Positions 27,661 through 55,282 are shown, counted from the stretch's first letter. The stretch is DNA of 64,000 bases from Cyanophora paradoxa CCMP329 (GCA_004431415.1 QPMI01000218.1:1-64000); one strand, 5' to 3'. Numbers and translations are program-made. Notes: generated by a model not told the origin, from the sequence alone.

Positions 27661-30600
27661 CTAGCTCTGGAGCATGGCAGCGATCATGCAGAGGATACAG
27701 ACGGCGTTCAGAGAATGCGAGGCGGGTCCTGGGGTGCCGCTCGCGGACATTGGCACGACCGACAGCTGCACTGCCTTCCCCGACGGCAGGTTCTGGCACT
27801 TGAACGAGGTCTGGGTGCCGGGCACGGTTGCGATGGGGAGCCCGCCCTGCAGGACGGCGTACGTGGCGGGCGCGCCGGTCGCCGGGTGCTTCCACGTGAG
27901 CGTGCCCGTCGTGGTGCCGAAGGGCGGGCTCTCCACGTCCGCGAGCTCGAGGTCCGCCGGCGCCCCCGGGCCCGGGGCCCCCGGGGCCCGCGCCGCCGTC
28001 GTGGCGGCCGGCGCCGAGCCCGAGCGCGCGGGCGCCCCCCGACCGGTGCTGAGGAGCGGAAGGGCCAGGCTGGCGCTGCTCGGGGCGCGCTGCGGGCCCG
28101 GCCCGGCGGACTTGGACCGCACGGGCATCACCTCGAGAACCGCCCCCGGGGGCAGCCCCGTCGCCGTGTACGAGTTCTTGCCGCTGGCAGACGGGGGCAC
28201 GACCGCCGCCTGCTGCCCGTTGACGAGAACAGCGTAGCTGCGCGAAGGCCAGTCGGGTATCGATACCGGTGATTGACACACAGAAGCAGTACTTCAATTC
28301 ATAAGCGTAAATTGAAGCCATTTAATATTGCAACGAACCCGCTGATGTCGGCCTGCTGGGTCTTCGCAGGGGCATCCCAGGTGAGCTCTGCCGCCGACGC
28401 GTCGGGGGCGATGGGCGTCGCAGCCATGCTGAACGCGCCGCTCCGAGGCAGCGAGGATCCGGGGCTGGACGACACGAGGAGGGGGAACGAAGGCGTGCCG
28501 GCGGCGCCTCCGGCAGACATGGGGACAACGACGAAACTGGACGCTGACCCGTCACCCGCCCCTCCAGCACTGGCCGCGGACTGCGGCGGCCGGGCGGGGA
28601 TGTTGAAGGACGTCTGGGAACGAGGGACCGCGCCCACAACCCGGCCGTTCTGCATGACAGTGTACGATGCCGCGGGGCCCGCCGCGGGATGCTTCCACGA
28701 CAGCGTTCCGGAGGAGGGCGACGCGTGAGTGGCGGTGAGGCAAAGGCCGGAGGGCGCTTGCGGGCTCGGGGCCGCCCCTGCGAAACTGGCACCGCTGGAC
28801 GGAGTAACGGGGACTTGCGGGCTGGCCGGGCCGCTCGGCGCGCCCGACGGCGAGAGCGGCACCACCGAGAAGGCCGCGGGGGCGTTCGGCTGCAGGCCCG
28901 TCGCAGTGAAGGTGTTCGTGTCGGCGCCCGTCGCGGGCACGGTCGCGATCTGCTGGCCGTTCTTGAGGACAGCGAACCTGAAGGCGCGCACGCAGCCCGC
29001 TCAATCAGCATAGCCGCCGCAGAAATGGAAGCGAAAGCATTGCGCGGAGCCCGCGCTACGCACTGCGAGGTGGGGCCAGCGCCGCCCTGCGGCCGGTTCC
29101 ACGCGAGGCGAGCGCTCGACGCCGAGGCCGGCGTCGCCGTCAGCGTGATGCCCGCACCAGGGCTCGACGGGACGCCCACAGAGAGCGGGGCCGAGGCCGT
29201 GCCCGGCGCGCCGCCCGGTCCCATCGGGACGACGCTGAGCGTCGCCACGCCGTCGCGCGGCAGGTCCGAGACGCTAGTCGAGGTGCTGCTGCCTGGAACG
29301 GTGTCGACGGGGCGCCGTCCTTCATGATCTGGTAGCTCTGCGGGGCGCCCGTCGCCGGGTGGTTCCACGAGAGGGTGCCCGAGGTGCCGCCCAGGAGGCC
29401 CGTCGAGACGTTCGTGAGCTGCACGTTGGACGGAGCAGAAAGGGCGCCCGCGCCCGGCGAGCCCGCGCCGCCGAGGCCGCTCGCCGGCGTCACTGGCACC
29501 TGCACGCTGGCGGGCCGGACGGGGAGCCCGACGGCGAGAGCGGCACAACCGAGAAGACGGCCGGCACGCCGGGCTGCAGGCCCGTCGCCACGAACGAGTT
29601 CGTCTCGCCGGTCGCCGGCACCGTCGCGACCGGCTGGCCGTTCTGGAGGACGGAGTACGACGCCCTGCGCGAAACACGCTTCCGCGTCAGACTCGCGCCG
29701 CGAAACACTCGCCCACGCCCCGGGGCGGGGCGGGCGGCAGGGCGGGGCACGCACGGGGCGCCGGCGCCGCCCTGCGGGCGGTTCCACGCGAGCTTGGCGC
29801 TGGAGGCCGAGGCCGGCGTGGCCGTGAGGACGAGCCCGGAGCCCGGGTTCGACGGGATGCCCGCGGCAAGGGACGGCGACGGAGTGCCCGCAGCGCCACC
29901 GGGCTGATGGGCACGACGCTGAGGTTCGCCACGCCGCCGCGCGGCAGGTCGGAGACGGTTGCGGATGTCTTGCTGCCCGGGACGGTGCCGACGGAAACGC
30001 CGTCCTTCACGATCTGGTAGCTCTGCGGGGCGCCCGTCGCCGGCGGGCTCCACGAGAGGGTGCCCGAGGCGCTGCTTCCGCCCGAGGGCGACACGCTCGT
30101 GAGCTGCAGGTTCGAGGGGGCGGAGGGCGAGGAGGCGCCGGGCCCGAAGCCCGCGCCGCCGGCCCCCGCGTACGGCGTGACGGGGACTTGCGGGCTGGCC
30201 GGGCCGCTCGGCGCGCCCGACGGCGAGAGCGGCACCACCGAGAAGGCCGCGGGGGCGTTCGGCTGCAGGCCCGTCGCAGTGAAGGTGTTCGTGTCGGCGC
30301 CCGTCGCGGGCACGGTCGCGATCTGCTGGCCGTTCTTGAGGACAGCGAACCTGAAGGCGCGCACGCAGCCCGCTCAATCAGCATAGCCGCCGCAGAAATG
30401 GAAGCGAAAGCATTGCGCGGAGCCCGCGCTACGCACTGCGAGGTGGGGCCAGCGCCGCCCTGCGGCCGGTTCCACGCGAGGCGAGCGCTCGACGCCGAGG
30501 CCGGCGTCGCCGTCAGCGTGATGCCCGCACCAGGGCTCGACGGGACGCCCACAGAGAGCGGGGCCGAGGCCGTGCCCGGCGCGCCGCCGGTCCCATCGGG

Positions 30601-33600
30601 ACGACGCTGAGCGTCGCCACGCCGTCGCGCGGCAGGTCCGAGACGCTAGTCGAGGTGCTGCTGCCTGGAACGGTGTCGACGGGGGCGCCGTCCTTCATGA
30701 TCTGGTAGCTCTGCGGGGCGCCCGTCGCCGGGTGGTTCACGAGAGGGTGCCCGAGGTGCCGCCCAGGAGGCCCGTCGAGACGTTCGTGAGCTGCACGTTG
30801 GACGGAGCAGAAAGGGCGCCCGCGCCCGGCGAGCCCGCGCCGCCGAGGCCGCTCGCCGGCGTCACTGGCACCTGCACGCTGGCGGGGCCGGACGGGGAGC
30901 CCGACGGCGAGAGCGGCACAACCGAGAAGACGGCCGGCACGCCGGGCTGCAGGCCCGTCGCCACGAACGAGTTCGTCTCGCCGGTCGCCGGCACCGTCGC
31001 GACCGGCTGGCCGTTCTGGAGGACGGAGTACGACGCCCTGCGCGAAACACGCTTCCGCGTCAGACTCGCGCCGCGAAACACTCGCCCACGCCCCGGGGGC
31101 GGGGCGGGCGGGCAGGGCGGGGCACGCACGGGGCGCCGGCGCCGCCCTGCGGGCGGTTCCACGCGAGCTTGGCGCTGGAGGCCGAGGCCGGCGTGGCCGT
31201 GAGGACGAGCCCGGAGCCCGGGTTCGACGGGATGCCCGCGGCAAGGGACGGCGACGGAGTGCCCGCAGCGCCACCGGGGCTGATGGGCACGACGCTGAGG
31301 TTCGCCACGCCGCCGCGCGGCAGGTCGGAGACGGTTGCGGATGTCTTGCTGCCCGGGACGGTGCCGACGGAAACGCCGTCCTTCACGATCTGGTAGCTCT
31401 GCGGGGCGCCCGTCGCCGGCGGGCTCCACGAGAGGGTGCCCGAGGCGCTGCTTCCGCCCGAGGGCGACACGCTCGTGAGCTGCAGGTTCGAGGGGGCGGA
31501 GGGCGAGGAGGCGCCGGGCCCGAAGCCCGCGCCGCCGGCCCCGCGTACGGCGTGACGGGGACTTGCGGGCTGGCCGGGCCGCTCGGCGCGCCCGACGGCG
31601 AGAGCGGCACCACCGAGAAGGCCGCGGGGGCGTTCGGCTGCAGGCCCGTCGCAGTGAAGGTGTTCGTGTCGGCGCCCGTCGCGGGCACGGTCGCGATCTG
31701 CTGGCCGTTCTTGAGGACAGCGAACCTGAAGGCGCGCACGCAGCCCGCTCAATCAGCATAGCCGCCGCAGAAATGGAAGCGAAAGCATTGCGCGGAGCCC
31801 GCGCTACGCACTGCGAGGTGGGGCCAGCGCCGCCCTGCGGCCGGTTCCACGCGAGGCGAGCGCTCGACGCCGAGGCCGGCGTCGCCGTCAGCGTGATGCC
31901 CGCACCAGGGCTCGACGGGACGCCCACAGAGAGCGGGGCCGAGGCCGTGCCCGGCGCGCCGCCCGGTCCCATCGGGACGACGCTGAGCGTCGCCACGCCG
32001 TCGCGCGGCAGGTCCGAGACGCTAGTCGAGGTGCTGCTGCCTGGAACGGTGTCGACGGGGGCGCCGTCCTTCATGATCTGGTAGCTCTGCGGGGCGCCCG
32101 TCGCCGGGTGGTTCCACGAGAGGGTGCCCGAGGTGCCGCCCAGGAGGCCCGTCGAGACGTTCGTGAGCTGCACGTTGGACGGAGCAGAAAGGGCGCCCGC
32201 GCCCGGCGAGCCCGCGCCGCCGAGGCCGCTCGCCGGCGTCACTGGCACCTGCACGCTGGCGGGGCCGGACGGGGAGCCCGACGGCGAGAGCGGCACAACC
32301 GAGAAGACGGCCGGCACGCCGGGCTGCAGGCCCGTCGCCACGAACGAGTTCGTCTCGCCGGTCGCCGGCACCGTCGCGACCGGCTGGCCGTTCTGGAGGA
32401 CGGAGTACGACGCCCTGCGCGAAACACGCTTCCGCGTCAGACTCGCGCCGCGAAACACTCGCCCACGCCCCGGGGGCGGGGCGGGCGGGCAGGGCCGGGC
32501 ACGCACGGGGCGCCGGCGCCGCCCTGCGGGCGGTTCCACGCGAGCTTGGCGCTGGAGGCCGAGGCCGGCGTGGCCGTGAGGACGAGCCCGGAGCCCGGGT
32601 TCGACGGGATGCCCGCGGCAAGGGACGGCGACGGAGTGCCCGCAGCGCCACCGGGGCTGATGGGCACGACGCTGAGGTTCGCCACGCCGCCGCGCGGCAG
32701 GTCGGAGACGGTTGCGGATGTCTTGCTGCCCGGGACGGTGCCGACGGAAACGCCGTCCTTCACGATCTGGTAGCTCTGCGGGGCGCCCGTCGCCGGCGGG
32801 CTCCACGAGAGGGTGCCCGAGGCGCTGCTTCCGCCCGAGGGCGACACGCTCGTGAGCTGCAGGTTCGAGGGGGCGGAGGGCGAGGAGGCGCCGGGCCCGA
32901 AGCCCGCGCCGCCGGCCCCCGCGTACGGCGTGACGGGGACTTGCGGGCTGGCCGGGCCGCTCGGCGCGCCCGACGGCGAGAGCGGCACCACCGAGAAGGC
33001 CGCGGGGGCGTTCGGCTGCAGGCCCGTCGCAGTGAAGGTGTTCGTGTCGGCGCCCGTCGCGGGCACGGTCGCGATCTGCTGGCCGTTCTTGAGGACAGCG
33101 AACCTGAAGGCGCGCACGCAGCCCGCTCAATCAGCATAGCCGCCGCAGAAATGGAAGCGAAAGCATTGCGCGGAGCCCGCGCTACGCACTGCGAGGTGGG
33201 GCCAGCGCCGCCCTGCGGCCGGTTCCACGCGAGGCGAGCGCTCGACGCCGAGGCCGGCGTCGCCGTCAGCGTGATGCCCGCACCAGGGCTCGACGGGACG
33301 CCCACAGAGAGCGGGGCCGAGGCCGTGCCCGGCGCGCCGCCCGGTCCCATCGGGACGACGCTGAGCGTCGCCACGCCGTCGCGCGGCAGGTCCGAGACGC
33401 TAGTCGAGGTGCTGCTGCCTGGAACGGTGTCGACGGGGCGCCGTCCTTCATGATCTGGTAGCTCTGCGGGCGCCCGTCGCCGGGTGGTTCCACGAGAGGG
33501 TGCCCGAGGTGCCGCCAGGAGGCCCGTCGAGACGTTCGTGAGCTGCACGTTGGACGGAGCAGAAAGGGCGCCCGCGCCCGGCGAGCCCGCGCCGCCGAGG

Positions 33601-36600
33601 CCGCTCGCCGGCGTCACTGGCACCTGCACGCTGGCGGGGCCGGACGGGGAGCCCGACGGCGAGAGCGGCACAACCGAGAAGACGGCCGGCACGCCGGGCT
33701 GCAGGCCCGTCGCCACGAACGAGTTCGTCTCGCCGGTCGCCGGCACCGTCGCGACCGGCTGGCCGTTCTGGAGGACGGAGTACGACGCCCTGCGCGAAAC
33801 ACGCTTCCGCGTCAGACTCGCGCCGCGAAACACTCGCCCACGCCCCGGGGGCGGGGCGGGCGGGCAGGGCCGGGCACGCACGGGGCGCCGGCGCCGCCCT
33901 GCGGGCGGTTCCACGCGAGCTTGGCGCTGGAGGCCGAGGCCGGCGTGGCCGTGAGGACGAGCCCGGAGCCCGGGTTCGACGGGATGCCCGCGGCAAGGGA
34001 CGGCGACGGAGTGCCCGCAGCGCCACCGGGGCTGATGGGCACGACGCTGAGGTTCGCCACGCCGCCGCGCGGCAGGTCGGAGACGGTTGCGGATGTCTTG
34101 CTGCCCGGGACGGTGCCGACGGAAACGCCGTCCTTCACGATCTGGTAGCTCTGCGGGGCGCCCGTCGCCGGCGGGCTCCACGAGAGGGTGCCCGAGCGCT
34201 GCTTCCGCCCGAGGGCGACACGCTCGTGAGCTGCAGGTTCGAGGGGCGGAGGGCGAGGAGGCGCCGGGCCCGAAGCCCGCGCCGCCGGCCCCGCGTACGG
34301 CGTGACGGGGACTTGCGGGCTGGCCGGGCCGCTCGGCGCGCCCGACGGCGAGAGCGGCACCACCGAGAAGGCCGCGGGGCGTTCGGCTGCAGGCCCGTCG
34401 CAGTGAAGGTGTTCGTGTCGGCGCCCGTCGCGGGCACGGTCGCGATCTGCTGGCCGTTCTTGAGGACAGCGAACCTGAAGGCGCGCACGCAGCCCGCTCA
34501 ATCAGCATAGCCGCCGCAGAAATGGAAGCGAAAGCATTGCGCGGAGCCCGCGCTACGCACTGCGAGGTGGGGCCAGCGCCGCCCTGCGGCCGGTTCCACG
34601 CGAGGCGAGCGCTCGACGCCGAGGCCGGCGTCGCCGTCAGCGTGATGCCCGCACCAGGGCTCGACGGGACGCCCACAGAGAGCGGGGCCGAGGCCGTGCC
34701 CGGCGCGCCGCCCGGTCCCATCGGGACGACGCTGAGCGTCGCCACGCCGTCGCGCGGCAGGTCCGAGACGCTAGTCGAGGTGCTGCTGCCTGGAACGGTG
34801 TCGACGGGGGCGCCGTCCTTCATGATCTGGTAGCTCTGCGGGCGCCCGTCGCCGGGTGGTTCCACGAGAGGGTGCCCGAGGTGCCGCCCAGGAGGCCCGT
34901 CGAGACGTTCGTGAGCTGCACGTTGGACGGAGCAGAAAGGGCGCCCGCGCCCGGCGAGCCCGCGCCGCCGAGGCCGCTCGCCGGCGTCACTGGCACCTGC
35001 ACGCTGGCGGGGCCGGACGGGGAGCCCGACGGCGAGAGCGGCACAACCGAGAAGACGGCCGGCACGCCGGGCTGCAGGCCCGTCGCCACGAACGAGTTCG
35101 TCTCGCCGGTCGCCGGCACCGTCGCGACCGGCTGGCCGTTCTGGAGGACGGAGTACGACGCCCTGCGCGAAACACGCTTCCGCGTCAGACTCGCGCCGCG
35201 AAACACCCGCCCACGCCCCGGGGGCGGGGCGGGCGGGCAGGGCCGGGCACGCACGGGGCGCCGGCGCCGCCCTGCGGGCGGTTCCACGCGAGCTTGGCGC
35301 TGGAGGCCGAGGCCGGCGTGGCCGTGAGGACGAGCCCGGAGCCCGGGTTCGACGGGATGCCCGCGGCAAGGGACGGCGACGGAGTGCCCGCAGCGCCACC
35401 GGGGCTGATGGGCACGACGCTGAGGTTCGCCACGCCGCCGCGCGGCAGGTCGGAGACGGTTGCGGATGTCTTGCTGCCCGGGACGGTGCCGACGGAAACG
35501 CCGTCCTTCACGATCTGGTAGCTCTGCGGGGCGCCCGTCGCCGGCGGGCTCCACGAGAGGGTGCCCGAGGCGCTGCTTCCGCCCGAGGGCGACACGCTCG
35601 TGAGCTGCAGGTTCGAGGGGCGGAGGGCGAGGAGGCGCCGGGCCCGAAGCCCGCGCCGCCGGCCCCGCGTACGGCGTGACGGGGACTTGCGGGCTGGCCG
35701 GGCCGCTCGGCGCGCCCGACGGCGAGAGCGGCACCACCGAGAAGGCCGCGGGGGCGTTCGGCTGCAGGCCCGTCGCAGTGAAGGTGTTCGTGTCGGCGCC
35801 CGTCGCGGGCACGGTCGCGATCTGCTGGCCGTTCTTGAGGACAGCGAACCTGAAGGCGCGCACGCAGCCCGCTCAATCAGCATAGCCGCCGCAGAAATGG
35901 AAGCGAAAGCATTGCGCGGAGCCCGCGCTACGCTCTGCGAGGTGGGGCCAGCGCCGCCCTGCGGCCGGTTCCACGCGAGGCGAGCGCTCGACGCCGAGGC
36001 CGGCGTCGCCGTCAGCGTGATGCCCGCACCAGGGCTCGACGGGACGCCCACAGAGAGCGGGGCCGAGGCCGTGCCCGGCGCGCCGCCCGGTCCCATCGGG
36101 ACGACGCTGAGCGTCGCCACGCCGTCGCGCGGCAGGTCCGAGACGCTAGTCGAGGTGCTGCTGCCTGGAACGGTGTCGACGGGGCGCCGTCCTTCATGAT
36201 CTGGTAGCTCTGCGGGGCGCCCGTCGCCGGGTGGTTCCACGAGAGGGTGCCCGAGGTGCCGCCCAGGAGGCCCGTCGAGACGTTCGTGAGCTGCACGTTG
36301 GACGGAGCAGAAAGGGCGCCCGCGCCCGGCGAGCCCGCGCCGCCGAGGCCGCTCGCCGGCGTCACTGGCACCTGCACGCTGGCGGGGCCGGACGGGGAGC
36401 CCGACGGCGAGAGCGGCACAACCGAGAAGACGGCCGGCACGCCGGGCTGCAGGCCCGTCGCCACGAACGAGTTCGTCTCGCCGGTCGCCGGCACCGTCGC
36501 GACCGGCTGGCCGTTCTGGAGGACGGAGTACGACGCCCTGCGCGAAACACGCTTCCGCGTCAGACTCGCGCCGCGAAACACTCGCCCACGCCCGGGGCGG

Positions 36601-39600
36601 GGCGGGCGGGCAGGGCCGGGCACGCACGGGGCGCCGGCGCCGCCTGCGGGCGGTTCCACGCGAGCTTGGCGCTGGAGGCCGAGGCCGGCGTGGCCGTGAG
36701 GACGAGCCCGGAGCCCGGGTTCGACGGGATGCCCGCGGCAAGGGACGGCGACGGAGTGCCCGCAGCGCCACCGGGCTGATGGGCACGACGCTGAGGTTCG
36801 CCACGCCGCCGCGCGGCAGGTCGGAGACGGTTGCGGATGTCTTGCTGCCCGGGACGGTGCCGACGGAAACGCCGTCCTTCACGATCTGGTAGCTCTGCGG
36901 GGCGCCGTCGCCGGCGGCTCCACGAGAGGGTGCCCGAGGCGCTGCTTCCGCCCGAGGGCGACACGCTCGTGAGCTGCAGGTTCGAGGGGCGGAGGGCGAG
37001 GAGGCGCCGGGCCCGAAGCCCGCGCCGCCGGCCCCCGCGTACGGCGTGACGGGGACTTGCGGGCTGGCCGGGCCGCTCGGCGCGCCCGACGGCGAGAGCG
37101 GCACCACCGAGAAGGCCGCGGGGCGTTCGGCTGCAGGCCCGTCGCAGTGAAGGTGTTCGTGTCGGCGCCCGTCGCGGGCACGGTCGCGATCTGCTGGCCG
37201 TTCTTGAGGACAGCGAACCTGAAGGCGCGCACGCAGCCCGCTCAATCAGCATAGCCGCCGCAGAAATGGAAGCGAAAGCATTGCGCGGAGCCCGCGCTAC
37301 GCACTGCGAGGTGGGGCCAGCGCCGCCCTGCGGCCGGTTCCACGCGAGGCGAGCGCTCGACGCCGAGGCCGGCGTCGCCGTCAGCGTGATGCCCGCACCA
37401 GGGCTCGACGGGACGCCCACAGAGAGCGGGGCCGAGGCCGTGCCCGGCGCGCCGCCCGGTCCCATCGGGACGACGCTGAGCGTCGCCACGCCGTCGCGCG
37501 GCAGGTCCGAGACGCTAGTCGAGGTGCTGCTGCCTGGAACGGTGTCGACGGGGGCGCCGTCCTTCATGATCTGGTAGCTCTGCGGGGCGCCCGTCGCCGG
37601 GTGGTTCCACGAGAGGGTGCCCGAGGTGCCGCCCAAGAGGCCCGTCGAGACGTTCGTGAGCTGCACGTTGGACGGAGCAGAGGGGGCGCCCGCGCCCGGC
37701 GAGCCCGCGCCGCCGAGGCCGCTCGCCGGCGTCACTGGCACCTGCACGCTGGCGGGGCCGGACGGGGAGCCCGACGGCGAGAGCGGCACAACCGAGAAGA
37801 CGGCCGGCACGCCGGGCTGCAGGCCCGTCGCCACGAACGAGTTCGTCTCGCCGGTCGCCGGCACCGTCGCGACCGGCTGGCCGTTCTGGAGGACGGAGTA
37901 CGACGCCCTGCGCGAAACACGCTTCCGCGTCAGACTCGCGCCGCGAAACACCGCCCACGCCCGGGGCGGGGCGGGCGGGCAGGGCGGGCACGCACGGGGC
38001 GCCGGCGCCGCCCTGCGGGCGGTTCCACGCGAGCTTGGCGCTGGAGGCCGAGGCCGGCGTGGCCGTGAGGACGAGCCCGGAGCCCGGGTTCGACGGGATG
38101 CCCGCGGCAAGGGACGGCGACGGAGTGCCCGCGGCGCCACCGGGGCTGATGGGCACGACGCTGAGGTTCGCCACGCCGCCGCGCGGCAGGTCGGAGACGG
38201 TTGCGGATGTCTTGCTGCCCGGACGGTGCCGACGGAAACGCCGTCCTTCACGATCTGGTAGCTCTGCGGGGCGCCCGTCGCCGGCGGGCTCCACGAGAGG
38301 GTGCCCGAGGCGCTGCTTCGCCCGAGGGCGACACGCTCGTGAGCTGCAGGTTCGAGGGGCGGAGGGCGAGGAGGCGCCGGGCCCGAAGCCCGCGCCGGCC
38401 CCCGCGTACGGCGTGACGGGGACTTGCGGCTGGCCGGGCCGCTCGGCGCGCCCGACGGCGAGAGCGGCACCACCGAGAAGGCCGCGGGGGCGTTTGGCTG
38501 CAGGCCCGTCGCAGTGAAGGTGTTCGTGTCGGCGCCGTCGCGGGCACGGTCGCGATCTGCTGGCCGTTCTTGAGGACAGCGAACCTGAAGGCGCGCACGC
38601 AGCCGCTCAATCAGCATAGCCGCCGCAGAAATGGAAGCGAAAGCATTGCGCGGAGCCCGCGCTACGCACTGCGAGGTGGGGCCAGCGCGCCCTGCGGCCG
38701 GTTCCACGCGAGGCGAGCGCTCGACGCCGAGGCCGGCGTCGCCGTCAGCGTGATGCCCGCACCAGGGCTCGACGGGACGCCCACAGAGAGCGGGGCCGAG
38801 GCCGTGCCCGGCGCGCCGCCCGGTCCCGTCGGGACGACGCTGAGCGTCGCCACGCCGTCGCGCGGCAGGTCCGAGACGCTAGTCGAGGTGCTGCTGCCTG
38901 GAACGGTGTCGACGGGGGCGCCGTCCTTCATGATCTGGTAGCTCTGCGGGGCGCCCGTCGCCGGGTGGTTCACGAGAGGGTGCCCGAGGTGCCGCCCAGG
39001 AGGCCCGTCGAGACGTTCGTGAGCTGCACGTTGGACGGAGCAGAAAGGGCGCCCGCGCCCGGCGAGCCCGCGCCGCCGAGGCCGCTCGCCGGCGTCACTG
39101 GCACCTGCACGCTGGCGGGGCCGGACGGGGATCCCGACGGCGAGAGCGGCACAACCGAGAAGACGGCCGGCGCGCCGGGCTGCAGGCCCGTCGCCACGAA
39201 CGAGTTCGTCTCGCCGGTCGCCGGCACCGTCGCGACCGGCTGGCCGTTCTGGAGGACGGAGTACGACGCCCTGCGCGAAACACGCCTCCGCGTCAGACTC
39301 GCGCCGCGAAACACCCGCCCAAGCCCCGGGGGCGGGGCGGGCGGGCAGGGCGGGGCACGCACGGGGCGCCGGCGCCGCCCTGCGGGCGGTTCCACGCGAG
39401 CTTGGCGCTGGAGGCCGAGGCCGGCGTGGCCGTGAGGACGAGCCCGGAGCCCGGGTTCGACGGGATGCCCGCGGCAAGGGACGGCGACGGAGTGCCCGCA
39501 GCGCCACCGGGGCTGATGGGCACGACGCTGAGGTTCGCCACGCCGCCGCGCGGCAGGTCGGAGACGGTTGCGGATGTCTTGCTGCCCGGGACGGTGCCGA

Positions 39601-42600: not shown

Positions 42601-45600
42601 CGGGCTGCAGGCCCGTCGCCGTGAAGGTGTTCGGTCCGGCGCCTGCTGCGGGGACGGTCGCGACCTGCTGTCCGTTCGCAAGGACGGCAAACCTGCAGGC
42701 GCACGCGCGGGCGGACAAGTCAGCATGCGCATGGCCGCGAAATTAAACCCGCGCAGTTTCGCGGGGTCCCCCCACGCACTGCGAGGTGGGGCCAGCGCCG
42801 CCCTGCGGCCGGTTCCACGCGAGGCGAGCGCTCGACGCCGAGGCCGGCGTCGCCGTCAGCGTGATGCCCGCACCAGGGCTCGACGGGACGCCCACAGAGA
42901 GCGGGCCGAGGCCGTGCCGGCGCGCCGCCCGGTCCGTCGGGACGACGCTGAGCGTCGCCACGCCGTCGCGCGGCAGGTCCGAGACGCTAGTCGAGGTGCT
43001 GCTGCCTGGAACGGTGTCGACGGGGCGCCGTCCTTCATGATCTGGTAGCTCTGCGGGGCGCCCGTCGCCGGGTGGTTCCACGAGAGGGTGCCCGAGGTGC
43101 CGCCCAAGAGGCCCGTCGAGACGTTCGTGAGCTGCACGTTGGACGGAGCAGAGGGGGCGCCCGCGCCCGGCGAGCCCGCGCCGCCGAGGCCGCTCGCCGG
43201 CGTCACTGGCACCTGCACGCTGGCGGGGCCGGACGGGGAGCCCGACGGCGAGAGCGGCACAACCGAGAAGACGGCCGGCGCGCCGGGCTGCAGGCCCGTC
43301 GCCACGAACGAGTTCGTCTCGCCGGTCGCCGGCACCGTCGCGACCGGCTGGCCGTTCTGGAGGACGGAGTACGACGCCTGCGCGAAACACGCTTCCGCGT
43401 CAGACTCGCGCCGCGAAACACCCGCCCACGCCCGGGGCGGGCGGCGGGCAGGGCGGGGCACGCACGGGGCGCCGGCGCCGCCCTGCGGGCGGTTCCACGC
43501 GAGCTTGGCGCTGGAGGCCGAGGCCGGCGTGGCCGTGAGGACGAGCTCGGAGCCCGGGTTTGACGGGATGCCCGCGGCAAGGGACGGCGACGGAGTGCCC
43601 GCAGCGCCACCGGGGCTGATGGGCACGACGCTGAGGTTCGCCACGCCGCCGCGCGGCAGGTCGGAGACGGTTGCGGATGTCTTGCTGCCCGGGACGGTGC
43701 CGACGGAAACGCCGTCCTTCACGATCTGGTAGCTCTGCGGGGCGCCCGTCGCCGGCGGGCTCCACGAGAGGGTGCCCGAGGTGCCGCCCATGAGGCCCGA
43801 GGAGACGTTGGTGAGCTGCAGGTTCGAGGGGGCGGAGGGCGAGGAGGCGCCGGGCCCAAAGCCCGCGCCGCCGGCCCCCGCGTACGGCGTGACGGGGACT
43901 TGCGGGCTGGCCGGGCCGCTCGGCGCGCCCGACGGAGAGAGCGGCACCACCAAGAAGACGGCGGGCGCGCCGGGCTGCAGGCCCGTCGCCGTGAAGGTGT
44001 TCGGTCCGGCGCCTGCTGCGGGGACGGTCGCGACCTGCTGTCCGTTCGCAAGGACGGCAAACCTGCAGGCGCACGCGCGGGCGGACAAGTCAGCATGCGC
44101 ATGGCCGCGAAATTAAACCCGCGCAGTTTCGCGGGGTCCCCCCCCACGCACTGCGAGGTGGGGCCAGCGCCGCCCTGCGGCCGGTTCCACGCGAGGCGAG
44201 CGCTCGACGCCGAGGCCGGCGTCGCCGTCAGCGTGATGCCCGCACCAGGGCTCGACGGGACGCCCACAGAGAGCGGGGCCGAGGCCGTGCCCGGCGCGCC
44301 GCCCGGTCCCATCGGGACGACGCTGAGCGTCGCCACGCCGTCGCGCGGCAGGTCCGAGACGCTAGTCGAGGTGCTGCTGCCTGGAACGGTGTCGGCGGGG
44401 GCGCCGTCCTTCATGATCTGGTAGCTCTGCGGGGCGCCGGCGGCCGGCGGGCTCCACGAGAGGGTGGCCGAGGTGCCGCCCAGGAGGCCCGAGGAGACGT
44501 TGGTGAGCTGCAGGTTCGAGGGGGCGGCGGGGGATCCCGCGCCAGCGCCAGCGCCCGGACCCGCGGGGCCGAGGCCGCTCGAGGGCGTCACCGGCACCTT
44601 GCCTACATCTAAAGCACTTGAAATGAATTTCGCGCGAGAAGTGTAGACGTAGGCAGCGGCAGCAAGTACTGCAGCGGCGCCAACCCCCGCCGTGATTCCT
44701 GCAATCAACGATTTCGTCTTCGAATCGTTCGATTCCTTCATAATTTAGAGAAAAGCAAGAAAGAGTCATGATCAGACATCCGCGCTTGCGAGGCCGCGAA
44801 TCATCAACAGTAAATGGTACCTGCTCTTTGTTGTCATCCGTTGGCGCAGTCCAGCCCACAATAGAATTTGCTCCAAAAGATGCAGCACTAGGAATTAGCC
44901 TTCCAACAGTGAACGTTGTCTGCAGTCAGGATCAGCAGCATATTTGCACCAGAGCTAGGAAGCTGAATATTCAACCCACCAGATGTGTACACCGCCCCCT
45001 AGCATACCAGGTCCCCTGTACATGTCAAATTACGATCGCCGCGACGCATCAGCCGTTTGATTTGATCTCGCAGAGAGGCCGCGATTGCGAAATTTAAAAA
45101 GCGCGCACGTTCCGCACGAAAATGTCTCCGGGGCTGGCGACGTCCTCCGCCTCTCCGAGGGCCATGTTGACGTCCGGGCCGCAGCGGTCCCAGCTCAGCC
45201 GCGTCGCGTTCCAAAACAGCAGCACCACGGGGCTTGTCGGCTGCGTCTTCTGTGTCGGCGGGTAGGGGATTTCTATGATGATTGGTAGACTTGAATCGAG
45301 TCCGTAAATCCGCGCTCTGTTTAGCGTTAGTCGAAAATCGCAATTGCCGTACTGTGACGTGAATTACCCCAAAACGGATACATCCACAAACCCGCCCACG
45401 AGCTCCGCGCGAAGAGACGGGCCGCCGTCGAAGGGTTTATTTTCCGTTGAATACTGTTGAACGCAATAAGAGAAGTTAAGAGGCAGCTAATTTCAAATTC
45501 TGCGCACCGGATTCCTTGCTATAGTCATGCAAGCAACCGCGAAACCGTCCGTGTTATTTGTCGGAACAAAAGCTTTGATTCCCTTTGGCAGAAACACTCT

Positions 45601-48600
45601 AGACAGCCCGATGCCTGGGGTCTCGTCCTGCAGAATTGGGTAGTACTCTCTTTTGTCTGCATCGAAAAGTTAGATGTACGACATATGCATTAAAATAAAT
45701 GTATGCATTGTTGCGCTACCTGTGAAACAGACTGCGGGCCAGACGAAGGGATCATGATCAGATCTAAATATGACCAATTTACGGCCGCTCGAGCGGAAAA
45801 AGCGCACTCTTCCCGGAAGTCACGCTGACGACTTCCTTCTTGCGGTTCTTCAGCCCCTGTCCGCACGGCCTGCAGCGCGCCAGCGCCTCCTGGGGGTTCT
45901 TCACGAAGGCCAGCAGCGAGTCCGCGAGGCTGCCCGAGACGGCCGAGGCGGCGGCCTGGCTTGTCGGCGTCTTAGCGGCCGGTGTCCAGCTTTCCCCGCT
46001 GGAGAGTGCCGTCGAGGTTCAGGCACGCAGGCACAAAACGGCGGCAACGGAGGCAAACCTGACAGCCGCAGCAAGGGCTTGAATGGTCTAGCCATATGCA
46101 TGAGAGAACGTGGCGAATTGGCTTTGTAAGTTCAGGATCGAACGGTGACGATAAAATGCAGACGCGCACTGCATCGAGCATCGCCTCCGTCATATCGGGA
46201 GGGATGTCGCACGGATCGAACGTTGGGAAGCAGCCGAGAAGCTTATCTTGCCAGGTTGTGTTCAGAGATCTGCGAAAGCCACAGCAATTAATATCATAAA
46301 TGCGCAATTGCAAACGATCTTATTATAAGAAGAGTTCAAAGCAGTATCGATCACTTCGAGACGGGAGTCGATAAGGCCGTCAAGGCATAGGCCCCCTGTA
46401 ACTTGTCTGAGATCGTCGTCGCCGATCCTATCGCGCCACATGCGTGTAGGACCATCGCCTCCAGGGTAGCCGTCTTCCCCAATCGCGGACAGGGGTCTGG
46501 AGTGCGCGCGAGCGCGCGTGACTGCTTGTTTTGCGAAGAATTCGAACGTACGCGCAAAGGTGCGCACCTTCGGTGCTATTCAGCGCTAGAACAGTAGCGG
46601 CTGCTTTCACTCCTGTTATAATAGAGATATCTCTCTGTCTTGTCGATAAGACGCTATCTCCGGCCAGCTCATTGTAACGCCCCATGTATGCCTCGCAAAT
46701 GTCATCGGGGGCTCGGACGATGGCGCTGAGCGGATAATCTGCGCGTAGTATCTCAGAAACATGCAAGCAGAGATAGATCGTTAATGAATTAATTGTTTGC
46801 GCAAGGTGCTCATAGTTACCCGTCGAAGCCCCATTGGCGTCGGTAATCTGCCGATTGCGAGCGAGCAATCACGATCAATGATCATGATATGTACATGATC
46901 ATATATAATAACAATATGTGTCGAATCCGCAAACAATGTTGAAAGTTGAGTCGCGCACCGTAACTACGAGGGACAGCGGTTCCCCCACAGGGAGCGCCAG
47001 ATCGGCAAACGTCGTCGACAGTTGCGAGGGAACGATCATCTCTTTCGCGCCTTCCGGGGCCAGCCGCTGTCGTCCAAAGTCAAGTCAAACGACTGCAAGC
47101 GGAATGCCTTTTCTGCGTGGCATTGTGCGCACTTGCAGGGCGTATTCAAGCGGATAGCCAGACGTGTGGTTACCAGCTGGCTTCCAGTCGGAGCAGGTCA
47201 CAGTGAAGCGGTGGCGGAACACAATCCCCTCGGGGGGCTCGATCTTGCAAACACCCGGCTCGGGCGGCGCGATAAAGCGGACGAGCGTCTCGTCGAACAC
47301 TGCCCGTCGTCGTCAGCGGAGCACGAAAATATAGCCACATCGGCTGTCTGTCGCTTTGCGCGCCTACTTCATTTGCAGGGGCGTTGGGATAGCTCGCGGT
47401 GCAGCGGATAGCGTACAGCTTTCCAGGAACAATCGGAGGGCGTCCGTTTGGGGTAAAAGTTAGGTAGTGCTCGGCGGCAACCAGCCCGGGGCTCATGTAT
47501 CTGCAGGAATGCTGTAAGCAACGAGTGCAATAGATTGAGTGAAAAAGAGAGAAGTACGAAGAAATATTCTGCAGCTCGGGATCGCCGCGAGGAGCCACCC
47601 ACTGGGAAATCGCGATTGCATCATACCCCGGATCGTCGGCCACGCGCGAGCGGCAACGCAAGTAAAGAGTCTCGTCAATCGGAATGCGCGTGATGTTCTT
47701 CACCGGAGAAAGGGTCGTCTGCACGGGCCGCGGCCGTGTCGGACAGAGGCGCGATAGCGATTGCGATTGCGACTGCAAACTAGCTCTTACGTCGATTGCT
47801 ACAACGGGTAGGGCCTTCGCGAGCACTTGAATATCCACTGTGGTATTATCCTCACTCTTGGCACCGTTGGGACACGTTGAGATAACACGGAGATGAATCG
47901 TGTAATTGTTGTTGGGGTCGAATCCAGCTGGGCATTCGTTTTACGATCCAGGAATTAAAAAGAAACAAGTACTATGTAGCTTATGTGCAGTTGTGCGCAT
48001 GGCCGGGTCTTTAACGCACCGATTGGGAGTTTAGCGGCTGACGCGGCAGCTGCCGCAGAGCTCGGCGTCAGCGGGATCCGAGCTTGGGCGCCCGGTCCGA
48101 CTTCGTGAAGAAAAGTCCCGCTGAACGGAGCTCGGAATGCAACGAGACGCCAGTGGTAGAGCGTCGTGGCCGTCAGAGGGCATGATGGGTTATTCGACGG
48201 AGATCCGTCCACGAAGAAAGAGGCCTTACTCCCCACAACTCGATTCCCTGCAATTCAAATGCTTGATCATGATGCACATGTACATGCCTGTAGATGTACA
48301 TGTAGATCTAGCTCGATCTAGAGGTAACGAACCTCCTGCAATAATGGCACGAACGGGAAGATCGCTGATGAGATCGATGTTGCACCGTGTCCAATTGCTC
48401 GCGAAGGAGCCGTCCGGCCTGCTGCTGTTTATGACAAGGTACAGGGTATATATACGTCCAGCATAGAATCCATCTGCATTTCCGCGGGCGAAAGGCAAAG
48501 CGTCAAATGCAGCGCGGAAATATGTATACGTATATACGCGCGGGGAAATTTTTCGTGTCGAGCTTGCGCTGACCTATACCTCCTCCTGCGCCGGTGGGGG

Positions 48601-51600
48601 CAAGAGGGACACTCGGCCCCGTCAGCGGTCCGACGCGTGCAAGAAGGCTTGGATCGCCGTAGGGCTTATCCAGCGGGTACAGGCTCCATGTGTACGTCAA
48701 GTTGGCCAGCTTCGGGTAACCCGGATCGTAGGATCTGCACGTACAATGTTTATATATACGCATGCGCATTCTTTGCTTCGATTTATAATTATCTACAGCG
48801 CGGGCGCACGGAGAGCCGTCGTATGTAAAGGTCTGGTCGTACGGGACGCGCTTCAGGTAGTCTCCGGCAATGATCGCGTACACTTCGATCCGACGTCGAC
48901 GGCGTCAAGCCGAGTACTAGCGGCGCAGACCTGGGCTCATACGTGCAGACCTGGGCTCTGCATGACCTCTATGTCGCAGCGAGTTGCGTTGGTTGCCCAG
49001 CCCAGCATGCCATCAGGCCTGCTGCTGTTTATCATCAAGTAGAGAGAATAACGGCCGCCCGCAAAGAAACCCGCTGCGCATGCGGCAGGAAAAGCCCCGG
49101 CGACCCCGTGAGCTGTGCGCTTTGAAGGCGACGCCTTGCGATAGCCAGATCAAATGCTCACGGGGTCCGCCAGCGCCCGTGGGAGCCAATGTGATATTGG
49201 TTGTCCGGAGCGGCCCGATCTTTGCGATTGGGTTTGGAGAGCCCATTGGAAGATTCAGAGGTTGCAGCTCCCACGAGTACGAGAGAACAGCATCCGGAAA
49301 GTTGCGGTCGAAGGACCTGTCTCTGGCGTCACAATACGGTCCACCACAAGAAGGAAAACTTCTTATCAAGCTTACTCTCGACCCTCGTAAGGGTACGGTG
49401 CATCAAAAGGAACGCGTTTAAGAAAGTCCCCAGAAATGATTGCCACAGCTGTACATGAGAACATTTTGTTATCACACAAAGAGATAGCCGTTAGTCTTTT
49501 AATGGCTCGCACGTGGATCCGTTGCAATAAATTCGATATCGCAGCGGGTGATATTCGTTGCGAATGTCCCATCCGGACGGCTGCTGTTAATGAAGAGGTA
49601 CAGCGTGTATCTCCGGCCGATGTAGAATTGCTCTGCATCGATCTGTCATACAAGCAAGGTGCTAGGTAACACACTCGATGAAGTAAAACTCTCCTCACCC
49701 AGACCTCCGGGTCCAGAACCTTTGGGAAACAGCGTCACGGTTCTCTCCGGCTGTTTGTAAGGGCCTTTCTGCACAATCAAACTCGAATCGCCGTAAGGCG
49801 CATCTAGCGGGTAAAGGCTCCACGTGTACGTCAGGTTTGCGTGCCGCGGGTATCCAGGGTCGTACGACCTGTCATCACGTCAACCCATAAAGAAACTGAC
49901 AAAGGAAAATTTGCACTGCTATCCTACAGCTATGATTTGGGGGCGCGCGCGCGGAGAGGGCGCACGGAGAGCCGTCGTACGTGAAGTTCTCTTTGTAGGG
50001 CACTCGCTTCAGGTAATCGCCCGCGATGATTGCGTAAACTGAGCATGCGCGCATTTGCACAGCGATTGCAGATCTAGAATTCGAAGCTCTGATTTAAATT
50101 TAGTGATCGTGGCTGACCCGGGCTTTGGATGATCTCGATATTACACAGAGTAGTATTGATGGGGTAGAGGGATTTTCCAGCATCGATGGGACGGGTAGAG
50201 TTGATAAGCAGATGCAGAGTGTAGTGTCGCCCGGCAAAAAATCCGGCTGATTATTTTTGAGGAATATTTATTAATGCTGGTCCTTGAACGAATGCTGAAG
50301 GAGAACATTTAAACGCACCAATTCCGTTGCTGCCATCGGGGGCAAGTGCGCCAAACGGCGTCAATGTGATGTTTTTTGGAGACGTCTTTGCCGTAGCGCT
50401 GTAGAGCGACGCGTTTCCCGCGAAGGCCGCGGGTAGGCCGATGGGAACGAGGCTCCAGATATAAGTCAAATTCGCAGAGGGGACTATCGCGTCGTAGGAC
50501 CTGTAGACGTTCCAGCGATAGATAGCAGTTATTGATACATCATGTGATCATGGGTTATATGTGTGGGGTATATGCGCACGGGGATCCATCGTAAACGAAC
50601 GGCGCATCGTACGGCACCCGCTTAGGATTCTCTCCAGCGATAATAGCGACAACAGGGCCATCGTCAAAGAATATATCGCAGCGGGTTTGATTGATCGCTG
50701 TTCTTCCGTCCGGTCGTGTGGTGTTCACGCGCAGATACAGACTGAACCAGCCGGGGACGTAACGAGCTGCGAGAACTCTAAGGAAGCGCCGGGGGACGAA
50801 ATCGCTGACTGTTTAGGGCAAATTACGAAAGAAAACGCACGAATTCCTCCCAGCGCGTAAGGGGTGAGAGTTACATTGTGCAGCGAAGTCCCCGGACCCG
50901 CCCTGAAGAGCCTGGACGCCGCCCCATACGTTGCGTTCAGGGGCTGCAGCTCCCACTCAAAGTAAAGAGTCGTCGTTCCGGGAACAGGGTAGTCCGGATC
51001 GTTCGAGCTGGCGAATGCAATCACGATCTTGAGGAGTTCAACAAGTAACCGTAGTGACATGCACGCACGGAGTGCCGTCGAAAATGTATGGCGACGCAAC
51101 AGGAACGGAGCGGGGATTTGGTCCACCTATAATCGCGAGAACTTGTACATTGCCGTCCGCAACATGCACAACGCAGCGCGTCTGGTTCACAGCCCATCCA
51201 TCACCGTAAGGGCGTGAAGAGTTGATTTTCAAGTGCAGCCAATAAGAGTTGTCAGCGAAGAATCCAGCTGCAGATGTGCCTTGAATCAGCCGCACGCGCT
51301 TGTTTGAAAACTATTTTACAACATAGCTGCCACGCACGAATCCCGCCAGCTCCAAACGGCGCGATCGTTATGGAGCTCGAGAGCTGCGCGCCGGAGGCCC
51401 AGATGACCTTGAGGGACCCGAAAGGCTCTCCTACAGGCTGTAGCTCCCACTCGTATCTAATCACAGCGGCAGCAGCGGCAGTGGAGTACGCAGAATCGTA
51501 AGACCTGCGCGCGTACGGACAGGCCGTGGCCGGGTGCCATGCCAGGTCCCGTCAGCTGCAGACTCGAGAGGAGGGCGGATAAATATCGAGAGCCAAGTCC

Positions 51601-54030
51601 GCACGGAGCGCCCTCGTATGTGTACGCCGTGTCGTGCGGCACGCGTTTGGTGGCGTCACCGTCAATAATAGCGAAGACTGCGGCGAGTTATTATCAGTCG
51701 CTCGGGTAGCTTCAGCGCCCCACAGATACATTGCAATTGCATGAGCAGGCTGCCAGGCTGGCGCATGCGCACCTCCCGTCAGGGGGCCCACGACGAACGT
51801 AATGTTGATTGCGCTGAAAGACTGCTTATTGTACGGAAGAGAGGTAACGTTAAGGTGGAATGTGTAGTTCTTTGTGTGCACGAAGCCCGGAATTCCACCC
51901 GCGGCCTCGGGCGTTAGAGTCACGTTCGGAGTGGAGAAAGGGCCGAGCTCCGTGATGAGGTTCGGGGAGGTGTAGGGTTCGCCAAAGGGCACAAGCCGCC
52001 AAGTGTACAGCAGCTGGCCGTCCGAATCTGCGGGATGCGATTGCGATTTCAGCGAATCTACGGAAATGGCGCTCAATTCGGCTCAAACAACGATACCCAG
52101 GTCATAGCTGGGAGAAGCATCAATGACCGCCGTGCTCGTTCGGAGTCTATTGACAATAGGATTGCCTGGCGAAAGCGGTAAGCTGTAGAGATGCGCCCGT
52201 GGACGGTTATAGAGTCGGCAAATTCGTGTCATTACCGCACCATTGCTGATTACAGCGTAGAGCGGACCTGCTCAAGCACATTCGATTCATGATCAGCTAC
52301 GAAATCACGAAACGGAAACTGGCCATGGAAGTACAGAACGCACAGTCCACTTTCGCAGGTGACAGGAAGTCTTTCGCGAAGTCCACCCAGCCTCCAAATC
52401 TGAGAACAAAAGCTCGGTAAGTTCTATTGAATCAATTGAATCTGCGATCGTCGGTGAACAGCTGCAGAGGGAGTGCAAGCCTGTTTTTCGGACGTAGAAG
52501 GAGCCGGTGGTGCCGGCAAGAGGCGAACGTGATGTTATATGCGCTACTCGTGAGATCGAGGCTCGTCTCGCTGGATCCGATGTTCTCAATTGTCCCGACA
52601 ACTGCTTCATGGTCCTCGAGCGATGTAGGACCGATCAATTTCGGTTTTCTAAGAGGGTCTTGCTTGAGCTACGAAGACGCATGCGTTTAATTAATCCATG
52701 GTCGCGATATCAATCGAGGGCATATCGAAGTTTCGCGAACCCTTATGACAAGTGCTGAGTAGCCGTAAGGACTGCCGGCTGGTGCGTTCCACGTGGCAAT
52801 GAGGGATGAGCTCACCGTCAGATCGGCAACTGATATCATGTTTGAGATCCGCGCTAGACACTCGTAGAAAGAAGCGGAACCTTTGTACTGGAAAGGATCC
52901 ACGTAGTTTCGGACGTCGCTTCTGTTGAAAAGAAAGGAGAACTGGCCGCTGAATGCGTCGCCTGGAATCATGCGGCCGGCGTTGCGATCCGAGAGGTTGA
53001 AGAAAAGAGACATGCGGTCTGCGTCTATGGAATTTGTTCCAATTGTATAGTCCGTGCCGTGACTGTCAAAGTTGTCTTCCGGAGGATAGAGATAAAAGAA
53101 CGGCTTGGCTCTGCACAGTGCGCGCGCGTCAATCACATACTTTTGGTCATCACGCACACGCGATGAACAGACCTCAAGCCAACTCTTGCCAGATTGTGGT
53201 CGGCGGCAAGTCCCAAATAGCACCGCTCTGACCGAGCTCAATCACGACCATGTGCGATCGCGAATCAGACTGAACGAGAAACCGCACACCGAGAATCTGA
53301 CCCCAGGAGCCTACGCCTGCAATCGTCCCACTCCCGTCCGCAAAGCCCTCGGCTTGGCGCTCGATCTCGTGGTTGACGGCCATATAATCTGCATTGCCTT
53401 CTATATCATGACCGTTCCTCGAAGGCCCCTGAGAATGCCATGCAGCCGGTCAAACGTTAACAGGCGCACATTTCAGATCTGTTCGGGAGGGCCACAAACC
53501 CAGTACGCCGCGCCGGGTTCTCCTGCCCTTGTTCCCCGCTGGTGATCGTTTCCTGGTAGAACGTTGCGGATGTAGTGTGGGAGAAGAACAGTAGTGGCCC
53601 CGGTATTCCTTCCGGAACCTCGTGAGCAGCCGATCGCGACAAGTGGAGCGAGCACCAATTGCAATTACGATGTTTCAATTCGCGTTCTCACCGGATGATG
53701 AGATTGACCCAAATCGTAATGGGGCCGCCAGAAACGTCCTTGAAAAAATACGAGTGGGTCACGGTGACCGAAGGGCTCGCCAGCGCCGCTGTGTGTTCTG
53801 CGGGAATCGCGCTCGTAAGCGTTTTAATTATAAGGCTGGAGCGCATGCAAAAACGAAAACAAATTCAGATTTGCGTGCCCACAAGAATGCCGTCGGCCTC
53901 CGTGGAAGTTTTCGTGATCGATCCGCTGAAGTAGGGCGCCGAGTTGGGAACAGTATTTATGGCCCCGGATGTCGGATCGACGGACTGCAGAGCTCGCTTC
54001 CAGGAGAACCCCACCAATTGCGCGCCCTCT
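27661..54030 (-). CDS. Giant single-pass receptor-like protein: REJ/PKD-like repeats + GAIN/GPS + TM + about 49 FN3-like domains; 5' end interrupted by the virus-like element
   Basis: Ectodomain repeats AIIAGDYLKRVPY..YDGSP|SYDP..LTYTWSL and the REJ motif PPEPGVCKIEPPEGIVFRHRFTVTCSDW..YPLEY. GPS-like LLFWNATRLSWDRCG...GRCTHL|TTFTV. TM LIAGITAGVGAAAVLAAAAYVY (~44645-44710). FN3-like APSNLQLT..TLSWSPP..YQIVKDG..TVSDL. Stop at 27661-27663. Confidence 0.8.
28790..44597 (-). repeat. Intragenic tandem array: 12 units of ~1.37 kb, each with 2 introns and 4 FN3-like domains
   Basis: The first intron/exon junction recurs at about 28975, 30348, 31722, 33100, 34471, 35846, 37215, 38581, 39955, 41317, 42689 and 44059. 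Confidence 0.95.
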
Positions 54031-54054
54031 TCTTTCCTTCCCCACTACCACATT

Positions 54055-54304
54055 CAGTAAGCCCATTATCCATTTTCGAATTTCTCAGTAAGGCTCAGTA
54101 ACAAACTATAAAATAGCACTGTATTTTTCAAACATCTAACCTCTCCTTACTGAAACCAATCACGAAACCCTTCCATTCTTCATTTTTCTAATTCCTTACC
54201 ATTCCCAGTAAGCCCTAAAACCCTCTCTCGATATCTCAGTAAGGACAGTAAGACCCATATTTTTACGAAATGTTCCCAATCGTTTCCAAACTGTTTTCAG
54301 TTAC
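54055..54304. repeat. Clustered CAGTAAG motifs at the element's left terminus
   Basis: Copies at 54055, 54086, 54096 (CAGTAAC), 54146 (inverted), 54206, 54237 and 54246, plus a degenerate copy at 54298. Confidence 0.75.
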
Positions 54305-54403
54305 CCAAATTGAAAAATCAAGGTGACCCCCACCGATAGCGTAAATCAACATATGAAATGCGTTTATCCCCACTTAAAGATTTCCCGCTATATAGCTATA
54401 AAG

Positions 54404-55255: not shown

Positions 55256-55282
55256 TGTTCTATCTAAGAGTGAGATTAAATT

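Follow-up and report, generated by a model that had tools for sequence, protein, structure and literature searches.

A stretch of 64,000 nucleotides (nt) of the Cyanophora paradoxa CCMP329 genome (QPMI01000218.1:1-64000, hereafter the window, by which we mean the whole stretch that was analysed) carries on its minus strand a locus that an earlier note had read as a REJ, GAIN and GPS ectodomain joined through one transmembrane (TM) helix to a long array of FN3 domains. One multi-exon minus-strand gene with an intact frame, encoding a REJ/GPS-type ectodomain, a single TM helix and an FN3 array, is in our view the best explanation of this locus, and we consider it probable with moderate confidence. 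Its predicted product is most likely a type-I membrane protein of ~7,000 residues, and the gene itself most likely belongs to a family of Cyanophora paradoxa paralogs. Directly supported are the order of the domains, the identification of REJ and FN3, the splice joins and the occurrence of the same layout in two paralogs. From its upstream end to the stop codon, the locus is composed of the following parts, in which P0002 to P0006 stand for proteins that are described below where they matter:

52459..53241, minus strand: most upstream recognisable coding region (tblastn of P0003 residues 26-174, E 8.7e-10)
47958..52160, minus strand: ~7-8 tandem REJ-like modules (module peptides recur in the window by local tblastn; P0002 and P0004 match)
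46635..47940, minus strand: REJ domain core (phmmer to P0003, P0002 and P0005; tblastn of P0003 273-550)
44980..46009, minus strand: GAIN-like region with the GPS motif at its end (colinear with P0003 665-940; paralog alignment)
44821..44919, minus strand: exon TTFTVGRLIP..TDDNKEQ, the putative tethered-strand equivalent (sequence; its first residue follows the predicted HL|T cleavage point)
44736..44820, minus strand: phase-0 intron of 85 nt, from ectodomain to TM/FN3 exon (sequence)
44643..44708, minus strand: predicted TM helix LIAGITAGVGAAAVLAAAAYVY (translation)
28809..44600, minus strand: homogenised FN3 array, 75% guanine plus cytosine (GC), ~12 units, 46 FN3 domains (period from Tandem Repeats Finder, motif count)
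27661..28808, minus strand: three divergent terminal FN3 domains, one more intron, hydrophobic C-terminus and stop (translations, motif and profile matches)

Base composition changes along the locus, from 75% GC at 28-44.6 kb to 53-55% at 44.6-54.1 kb, and falls abruptly to 40% from ~54.1 kb.

Splice joins between the ectodomain and the transmembrane exon

Reading of the sequence places three phase-0 splices exactly where the earlier note had put them, across GT-AG introns of 93, 60 and 85 nt:

45315-45109, minus strand: exon ..PIIIEIPYPP..LLFWNATRLSWDRCG..GDIFVRN
45108-45016, minus strand: intron of 93 nt, GTGCGC..ACAG
45015-44980, minus strand: exon GTWYARGRCTHL
44979-44920, minus strand: intron of 60 nt, GTGGGT..GCAG
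44919-44821, minus strand: exon TTFTVGRLIP..TDDNKEQ
44820-44736, minus strand: intron of 85 nt, donor GTACCA, pyrimidine tract, ending in ..TTATGAAG
from 44735, minus strand: exon ESNDSKTKS, then the helix LIAGITAGVGAAAVLAAAAYVY (44708-44643), unbroken into the first FN3 domain

The acceptor of the 85-nt intron is the first downstream AG, and the gaps in the tblastn alignment of P0003 to the window fall exactly at these introns. The predicted cleavage point HL|T is itself the site of a phase-0 intron (44979/44980, 44919/44920) and, as a consequence, the GPS motif is invisible in any single DNA reading frame. For the C. paradoxa genome, a mean intron of 86 bp and 67.6% GC have been reported (PMC6704402); the introns of the locus, at 55-93 nt, and its extreme GC content agree with these values, and the 85-nt interval fits the mean length. 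In addition, the polar segment ESNDSKTKS of the window resembles the polar segment ETSKSNNS of P0006, which is internal in that protein, lies ahead of the TM helix and has no Met at that place.

The case for one gene is built on four points: (i) the 85-nt interval has the look of the genome's ordinary introns and leaves the frame intact; (ii) an upstream gene that lacked the join would carry a GPS motif and no membrane anchor; (iii) the TM helix begins 44 residues past HL|T, where GAIN-type proteins place their first helix; and (iv) both annotated paralogs read through GPS, TM helix and FN3 domains. We hold with high confidence that the REJ/GPS ectodomain and the TM/FN3 exon are fused in one gene.

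Some observations weigh against this join. The sampled sequence words were found in DNA runs only, which date from 2012, and in none of the RNA-labelled runs of C. paradoxa; three such RNA-labelled runs yielded no contig over 43850-46850 save for a 34-nt paralog match. These RNA-labelled runs are small contig sets, so absence from them is weak evidence. Moreover, an alternative start codon, ATG 44741, falls inside the 85-nt intron, in frame with the helix and the FN3 array, and could open a signal anchor. The paralog gene models that we rely on are computational, and the genome authors state that such models need curation (PMC6704402). The missing RNA contigs and the alternative start would suit a locus of two genes, a REJ/GPS gene that ends near 44821 and a second gene that starts at ATG 44741, in which the helix acts as a type-II signal anchor and the FN3 domains lie outside the cell. 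The rise in GC from ~54% to 75% near 44600 would also fit such a division, as would a short hydrophobic C-terminus (AVCILCMIAAML) that could be a signal of the glycosylphosphatidylinositol type. The GC rise, however, falls where the homogenised repeat begins and not at the boundary of the TM exon. Within the supposed intergenic interval are a GT donor and a pyrimidine tract, its acceptor is the first downstream AG, it is in phase 0 and its length matches the mean intron of the genome (PMC6704402). Without the join, the upstream gene would be left with a GPS motif that no TM helix follows and a frame running into non-protein-like sequence, whereas both annotated paralogs form one model through GPS, TM helix and FN3 domains, P0006 having no equivalent Met. 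Two genes are, in our judgement, very improbable, and the single spliced gene remains the preferred reading.

Two further observations were made in the sequencing runs. The RNA-labelled runs X5 and X8 hold contigs of 653 and 777 nt that share only a 34-nt FN3 motif with the locus (44524-44557) and have flanks unlike it, which suggests transcription from a paralogous FN3-array gene. In the DNA run X1, one contig lacks 74 nt inside the first FN3 intron (44072-44147); this contig probably comes from a repeat unit whose intron sequence differs, and not from a spliced copy.

Paralogs with the same layout

Two annotated C. paradoxa proteins share the order of parts found in the window. The first, P0003 (tig00000131_g7474.t1, 1,531 residues), is, together with P0002, a Cyanophora paradoxa model of EukProt; it matches Pfam REJ and, towards its C-terminus, fn3. 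Its sequence runs ..LLFWNSTAQSWETCG..GGTWYLRGRCTHLTTFTTGTL.. and on to one helix, LAFILPIAFGIGGVALLLGGIAVA, past which a Q/N/P/Y/G-rich segment leads to FN3-like domains, the last of the same subtype as that of the window. By tblastn, P0003 is colinear with the locus in four segments:

P0003 26-174, window 53067-52459, minus strand: E 8.7e-10
P0003 273-550, window 47928-46635, minus strand: E 7.8e-50
P0003 665-940, window 46009-44890, minus strand: gaps exactly at the introns that had been proposed
P0003 1425-1505, window 44516-44280, minus strand: 55.6% identity, first FN3 domain of the window

The order along P0003 is thus the same as along the locus, namely REJ, GPS-like CTHL|TTF, one TM helix and FN3. 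The second protein, P0006 (tig00021532_g22184.t1, 1,228 residues), was found with the GAIN-like region of P0003 and shares the order GPS, TM helix, FN3. It reads ..LLFWNVTSESWEPC..GTYYARGRCTHLTTFTVG.., then the TM helix, then at least 10 FN3 domains of the same A-D subtypes (Pfam fn3, 108.7 bits over 7 stretches). Each of the two proteins is annotated as a single gene model that includes the GPS motif (..RGRCTHLTTFT..), the TM helix and FN3 domains.

Homolog searches with P0003:560-1010, with P0006:1-215 and with the paralog alignment returned only P0003 and P0006, so that no deep alignment could be made. No relatives came out of a metagenome locus scan with P0006:40-200, nor were contigs encoding P0006 found on record. 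Both paralog models stand unremarked in public annotation, and the published C. paradoxa gene models for such loci are fragmentary.

REJ-like modules and the REJ domain

The REJ domain that had been proposed for the ectodomain was recovered through its homologs. The 256-residue stretch encoded at window:47173-47940 matched five proteins among 1.84 billion representatives by phmmer, including P0003 (E 8.9e-21), P0005 (E 9.9e-06) and P0002, and the matched regions of these homologs score on Pfam REJ (PF02010), with 77 bits for P0003 (residues 298-543), 67 for P0005 and 24.9 for P0002. In line with this result, tblastn of P0003 residues 273-550 reached E 7.8e-50 against the window. The REJ identity of the predicted ectodomain is accordingly one that we regard as established by homology. 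Pfam run on ten ectodomain exons alone returned only fn3 and one chance match; single exons are too short to give a REJ or GPS match.

Upstream of this domain, the REJ-like modules (52.2-47.9 kb) measure ~115 residues each, are split over ~3 exons and have conserved Cys and N-x-S/T sequons. Their recurrent motifs are SYDPGYP..NLTYTWSL.., ..YTLYL.INSSRPDG..TRCDI.. and AIIAGDYLKRVPYD..YDGSPC. An unnamed ENA protein with 40 FN3 domains (P0001) was set aside as uninformative, its match being confined to a generic beta-sandwich segment.

A GPS-like motif ahead of the membrane

After the REJ domain and before the TM helix lies a GPS-like motif, F-W-N..S-W-x-x-C..C-x-H-L-T-x-F, that is invariant in three paralogs (LLFWN..SW..C..RGRCTHL|TTF). 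In polycystin-1 and suREJ, too, the GPS motif stands after the REJ domain and before a TM helix. The motif precedes the helix by 22-69 residues across the three paralogs, with ~44 residues from HL|T to the helix in the window, and ~375 residues separate REJ from HL|T. Where the window has an intron, the paralogs read CTHLTTFT(T/V)G unbroken, and His, Leu and Thr are present in all three proteins. A low-confidence AlphaFold model of P0003 has helices, then strands, then the TM helix. Furthermore, GPS and GPS+GAIN feature among the named ESM clusters that lie closest (0.85, 0.82, 0.77), which we take as a lead only.

Our searches did not bear out all that had been claimed for this region: the motif is in place, but GPS/GAIN profiles gave no match and the fold models were of low confidence. 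Of the four canonical GPS cysteines, the motif has only two. Pfam GPS/GAIN had no match even at E<=10, and neither phmmer nor hmmsearch with the GPS region found a relevant match in the PDB. The AlphaFold model of P0003:560-1000 as a single sequence reached a pLDDT (predicted local distance difference test) of 37.8, and that of a six-row paralog alignment 44.5; with models at pLDDT 38-45, a Foldseek comparison against the PDB returned noise only and is uninformative.

These results would also fit a different reading of the same gene, in which the juxtamembrane motif is a GPS look-alike that has neither a GAIN fold nor autoproteolysis and the protein is a large REJ/FN3 adhesin. The failed profile and PDB searches, the two missing cysteines and the unreliable structural models all fit it. 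A look-alike would, however, hardly be expected to stay invariant in three paralogs, to follow REJ and keep its spacing to the helix, to be preceded by ~375 residues predicted as helices and then strands, or to lie close to GPS/GAIN clusters in ESM space. We regard a look-alike as unlikely, and the region as a likely, predicted member of the GAIN class.

The FN3 array

Beyond the TM helix, the locus had been read as one exon without a stop. This proved wrong, the longest stop-free stretch being 915 codons, with the three frames alternating. Three-frame translation points to the cause: every second FN3 domain is split by a short intron, as illustrated by the donor CA|GTGCGTG at 44151 and the acceptor CAG| at 44063, which bound 89 nt. 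There are ~24 such introns in the array, two per repeat unit of ~1.38 kb. Other parts of the original description stood. Motif counting gives 49 FN3 domains (46 in the homogenised array and three divergent terminal ones), and the array does end at 27661, with a stop codon at 27661-27663 and a spliced length of ~4,980 codons from 44735.

According to Tandem Repeats Finder, a repeat marker recurs every 1,360-1,379 bp, and the array consists of ~12 tandem units, each with four FN3 domains of alternating subtypes A to D. A unit consensus, built from the alignment of ten consecutive units, is 1,378 bp long; once two GTGCGT..CAG introns (86 and 92 nt) are removed, 1,200 nt are left that hold no stop. 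These 400 codons make four FN3 domains of ~100 residues each, and the frame carries into the next unit. On exons of the window, Pfam fn3 (PF00041) scored 25.2, 29.4, 32.2 and 27.9 bits at a gathering cutoff of 25. Contig depth in the DNA run X1 is ~42 over the unique part of the locus, against a summed depth of 280-1,076 over FN3 segments (~7-25x); this is compatible with ~25 copies of each subtype pair, as a rough guide only, since paralogous loci may contribute to the depth.

As assembled, the array is not translatable, a point that has to be set against an intact frame. The ten aligned units contain 65 frame-shifting indels, of which 49 are exonic and 16 intronic. Against the consensus, however, interior units show 0-5 substitutions but 1-12 indel events each, and homopolymers of at least three bases account for 47 of the 56 one-base indels; one example of an indel is GCGCCCCCGTC versus GCGCCCCGTC in otherwise identical sequence. 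The published assembly of C. paradoxa was made from PacBio RSII reads and polished with Illumina reads, and stretches left uncovered were kept as PacBio sequence (PMC6704402). Since the unit consensus forms a clean 400-codon frame, and since the ratio of indels to substitutions is high and the indels fall in homopolymers, error explains the frameshifts better than decay. They are most likely long-read consensus errors, and the array would then be an intact spliced frame. Uncorrected indels in the GC-rich repeats of the assembly would break any automatic gene model there.

The last FN3 domain runs into ..GPASHSLNAVCILCMIAAMLQS and then the stop at 27661-27663. The short hydrophobic stretch that follows it directly (NAVCILCMIAAMLQS, 27664-27720) is too short for a TM helix and is not present in P0003 or P0006; it could be a lipid-anchor-type signal or be meaningless. 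Elsewhere in the window, 4000-8000 and 18000-22000 have 78-83% GC and long open reading frames in several frames on both strands, as does the FN3 array, and may be further GC-rich repetitive coding regions.

The 5' end and the neighbouring virus-like element

The proposed gene start at 54030 could not be confirmed: a search of 53241-54100 turned up no start codon with a signal peptide. No N-terminal signal peptide was seen in the paralog models either, which look truncated at their 5' ends. In addition, the 40% GC block begins at ~54.1 kb, directly upstream of the gene. These two features of the 5' end count against a complete gene, and they bear on whether this copy is alive: if the element cut off the 5' exons, the copy could be silent.

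One may therefore ask whether the locus is a dead or truncated copy, with a 5' end lost to a virus-like insertion at ~54.1 kb, frameshifts that are real, and no expression. The failure to find RNA contigs, the lack of a start or signal peptide below 54.1 kb and the 49 exonic frameshifts in 10 units, with exons not clearly spared relative to introns, would all agree with it. Nevertheless, the near-identical units differ far more by indels than by substitutions, and the indels sit in homopolymers, which is the signature of long-read error. The unique REJ/GAIN exons of 54% GC, moreover, have neither frameshifts nor in-exon stops when compared with the paralogs, and the absence of RNA contigs comes from the same small sets. 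A dead copy appears rather improbable to us, and we retain a gene with an intact frame.

As for the block itself, 54100-64000 holds intronless minus-strand open reading frames of 1,153, 340 and 96 residues, the largest of which has repeated HTHTK-SEITDF-type motifs and the look of a fibre protein. The block appears to be a foreign, virus-like element that lies directly upstream of the receptor gene or inside it. A repeat search around it gave no clear insertion boundaries.

Predicted topology and proposed function

The single TM helix that had been proposed corresponds to one strong hydrophobic segment, at 44708-44643, and the homologous helices are the only strong Kyte-Doolittle segments of P0003 and P0006 (2.3). 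As we read the sequences, positive charge is higher in the 15 residues that follow the helix than in the 15 that precede it, in all three proteins. The part before the helix has conserved sequons, and Cys makes up 1.2-1.9% of its residues and 0-0.1% of those after the helix (none in 559 residues of P0003, one in 1,033 of P0006), a contrast that is weak evidence of topology because FN3 domains are usually free of Cys on either side of the membrane. Single-pass topology, the positive C-terminal flank and the low Cys content after the helix lead us to suggest, tentatively, that the REJ/GAIN part may lie outside the cell and the FN3 array on the cytoplasmic side.

In the model that we propose, tandem REJ-like modules would be followed by the REJ domain, a GAIN-like domain and a C-T-H-L|T-T-F GPS site, predicted to be cleavage-competent. 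One TM helix would come ~44 residues past this site, and the same exon would continue as 49 cysteine-free FN3 domains (~5,000 residues). The ectodomain would cleave itself at HL|T and stay attached non-covalently, and the FN3 chain would form a long extensible tether, ~170-250 nm if extended, from the membrane to cortical structures. Force on the ectodomain would then be borne by, or reported through, this tail, and not by a bundle of seven or eleven TM helices (7TM or 11TM). A role as tether or mechanosensor is suggested by anatomy, namely by a putative autoproteolytic, force-sensitive juxtamembrane module combined with a modular chain of ~0.2 micrometres.

That Cyanophora has a family of giant self-cleaving single-pass REJ/GAIN receptors with titin-scale cytoplasmic FN3 springs is a possibility that we consider less likely than not. 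If true, a mechanosensitive module of the GAIN type would be linked straight to an elastic tether inside the cell and not to a 7TM or 11TM transducer, and an intracellular FN3 chain would occur outside animals. It would also widen the range of uses of GAIN-type modules in an early-branching alga, toward force bearing or shedding rather than tethered-agonist signalling, and would offer a family well suited to asking what role the module had before its 7TM and 11TM partners.

Comparison with known systems

Full-text literature searches, for Cyanophora or elsewhere, found no paper that describes this architecture, in agreement with the earlier note, and the genome paper makes no mention of a REJ, GPS, TM and FN3 arrangement (PMC6704402). 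Should the gene model and the topology hold, the REJ/GPS module of polycystins and adhesion G-protein-coupled receptors would here be joined to a wholly different intracellular output of ~0.2 micrometres. Ectodomains that combine REJ and GPS are known from polycystin-1, PKDREJ and sea urchin suREJ, and suREJ1 is reportedly a single-pass REJ protein (Moy et al. 1996 and later work on suREJ).

The protein of the locus resembles polycystin-1, PKDREJ and suREJ in having an HL|T-type, GPS-like motif after REJ and shortly ahead of the first TM helix, and in its large, modular, sequon-rich ectodomain; the REJ ectodomain itself is known from sea urchin (PMC2120838). It differs from the polycystin-1 family in several respects: (i) both a PLAT domain and an 11-TM or channel-like region are absent, and downstream of the helix Pfam matches fn3 and FN3-like families only; (ii) ~5,000 residues of FN3 stand behind the helix instead of a short tail; and (iii) Pfam GPS/GAIN do not detect the motif region of the Cyanophora proteins.

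In common with adhesion G-protein-coupled receptors, a GPS-like autoproteolysis motif precedes the membrane, and TTFTVG.. resembles their tethered strand. Unlike these receptors, however, the window, P0003 and P0006 have a single TM helix directly followed by FN3 and no 7TM region; with only one helix, there is no 7TM pocket that a tethered agonist could occupy. The Cyanophora protein also has an upstream REJ domain, which adhesion G-protein-coupled receptors lack. Another alga, Ectocarpus, has the REJ+GPS protein Esi0130_0068, for which 6-7 TM helices are predicted and which has a polycystin channel region (PMC4700764). This protein shows that REJ+GPS ectodomains are not confined to animals; it has no FN3 array.

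The tail, in turn, is reminiscent of titin and twitchin in its long cysteine-free FN3 chain, which here would likewise lie on the cytoplasmic side. For FN3 domains that stand behind one TM helix, the tail of integrin beta-4 sets a precedent. Unlike titin and twitchin, the array contains no Ig or kinase domains, and it is a tandem repeat, young and homogenised, built from four FN3 subtypes. What sets the locus apart from the polycystin-1/REJ kind is that it lacks any PLAT or multi-pass region and has an enormous FN3 array behind a single predicted helix.

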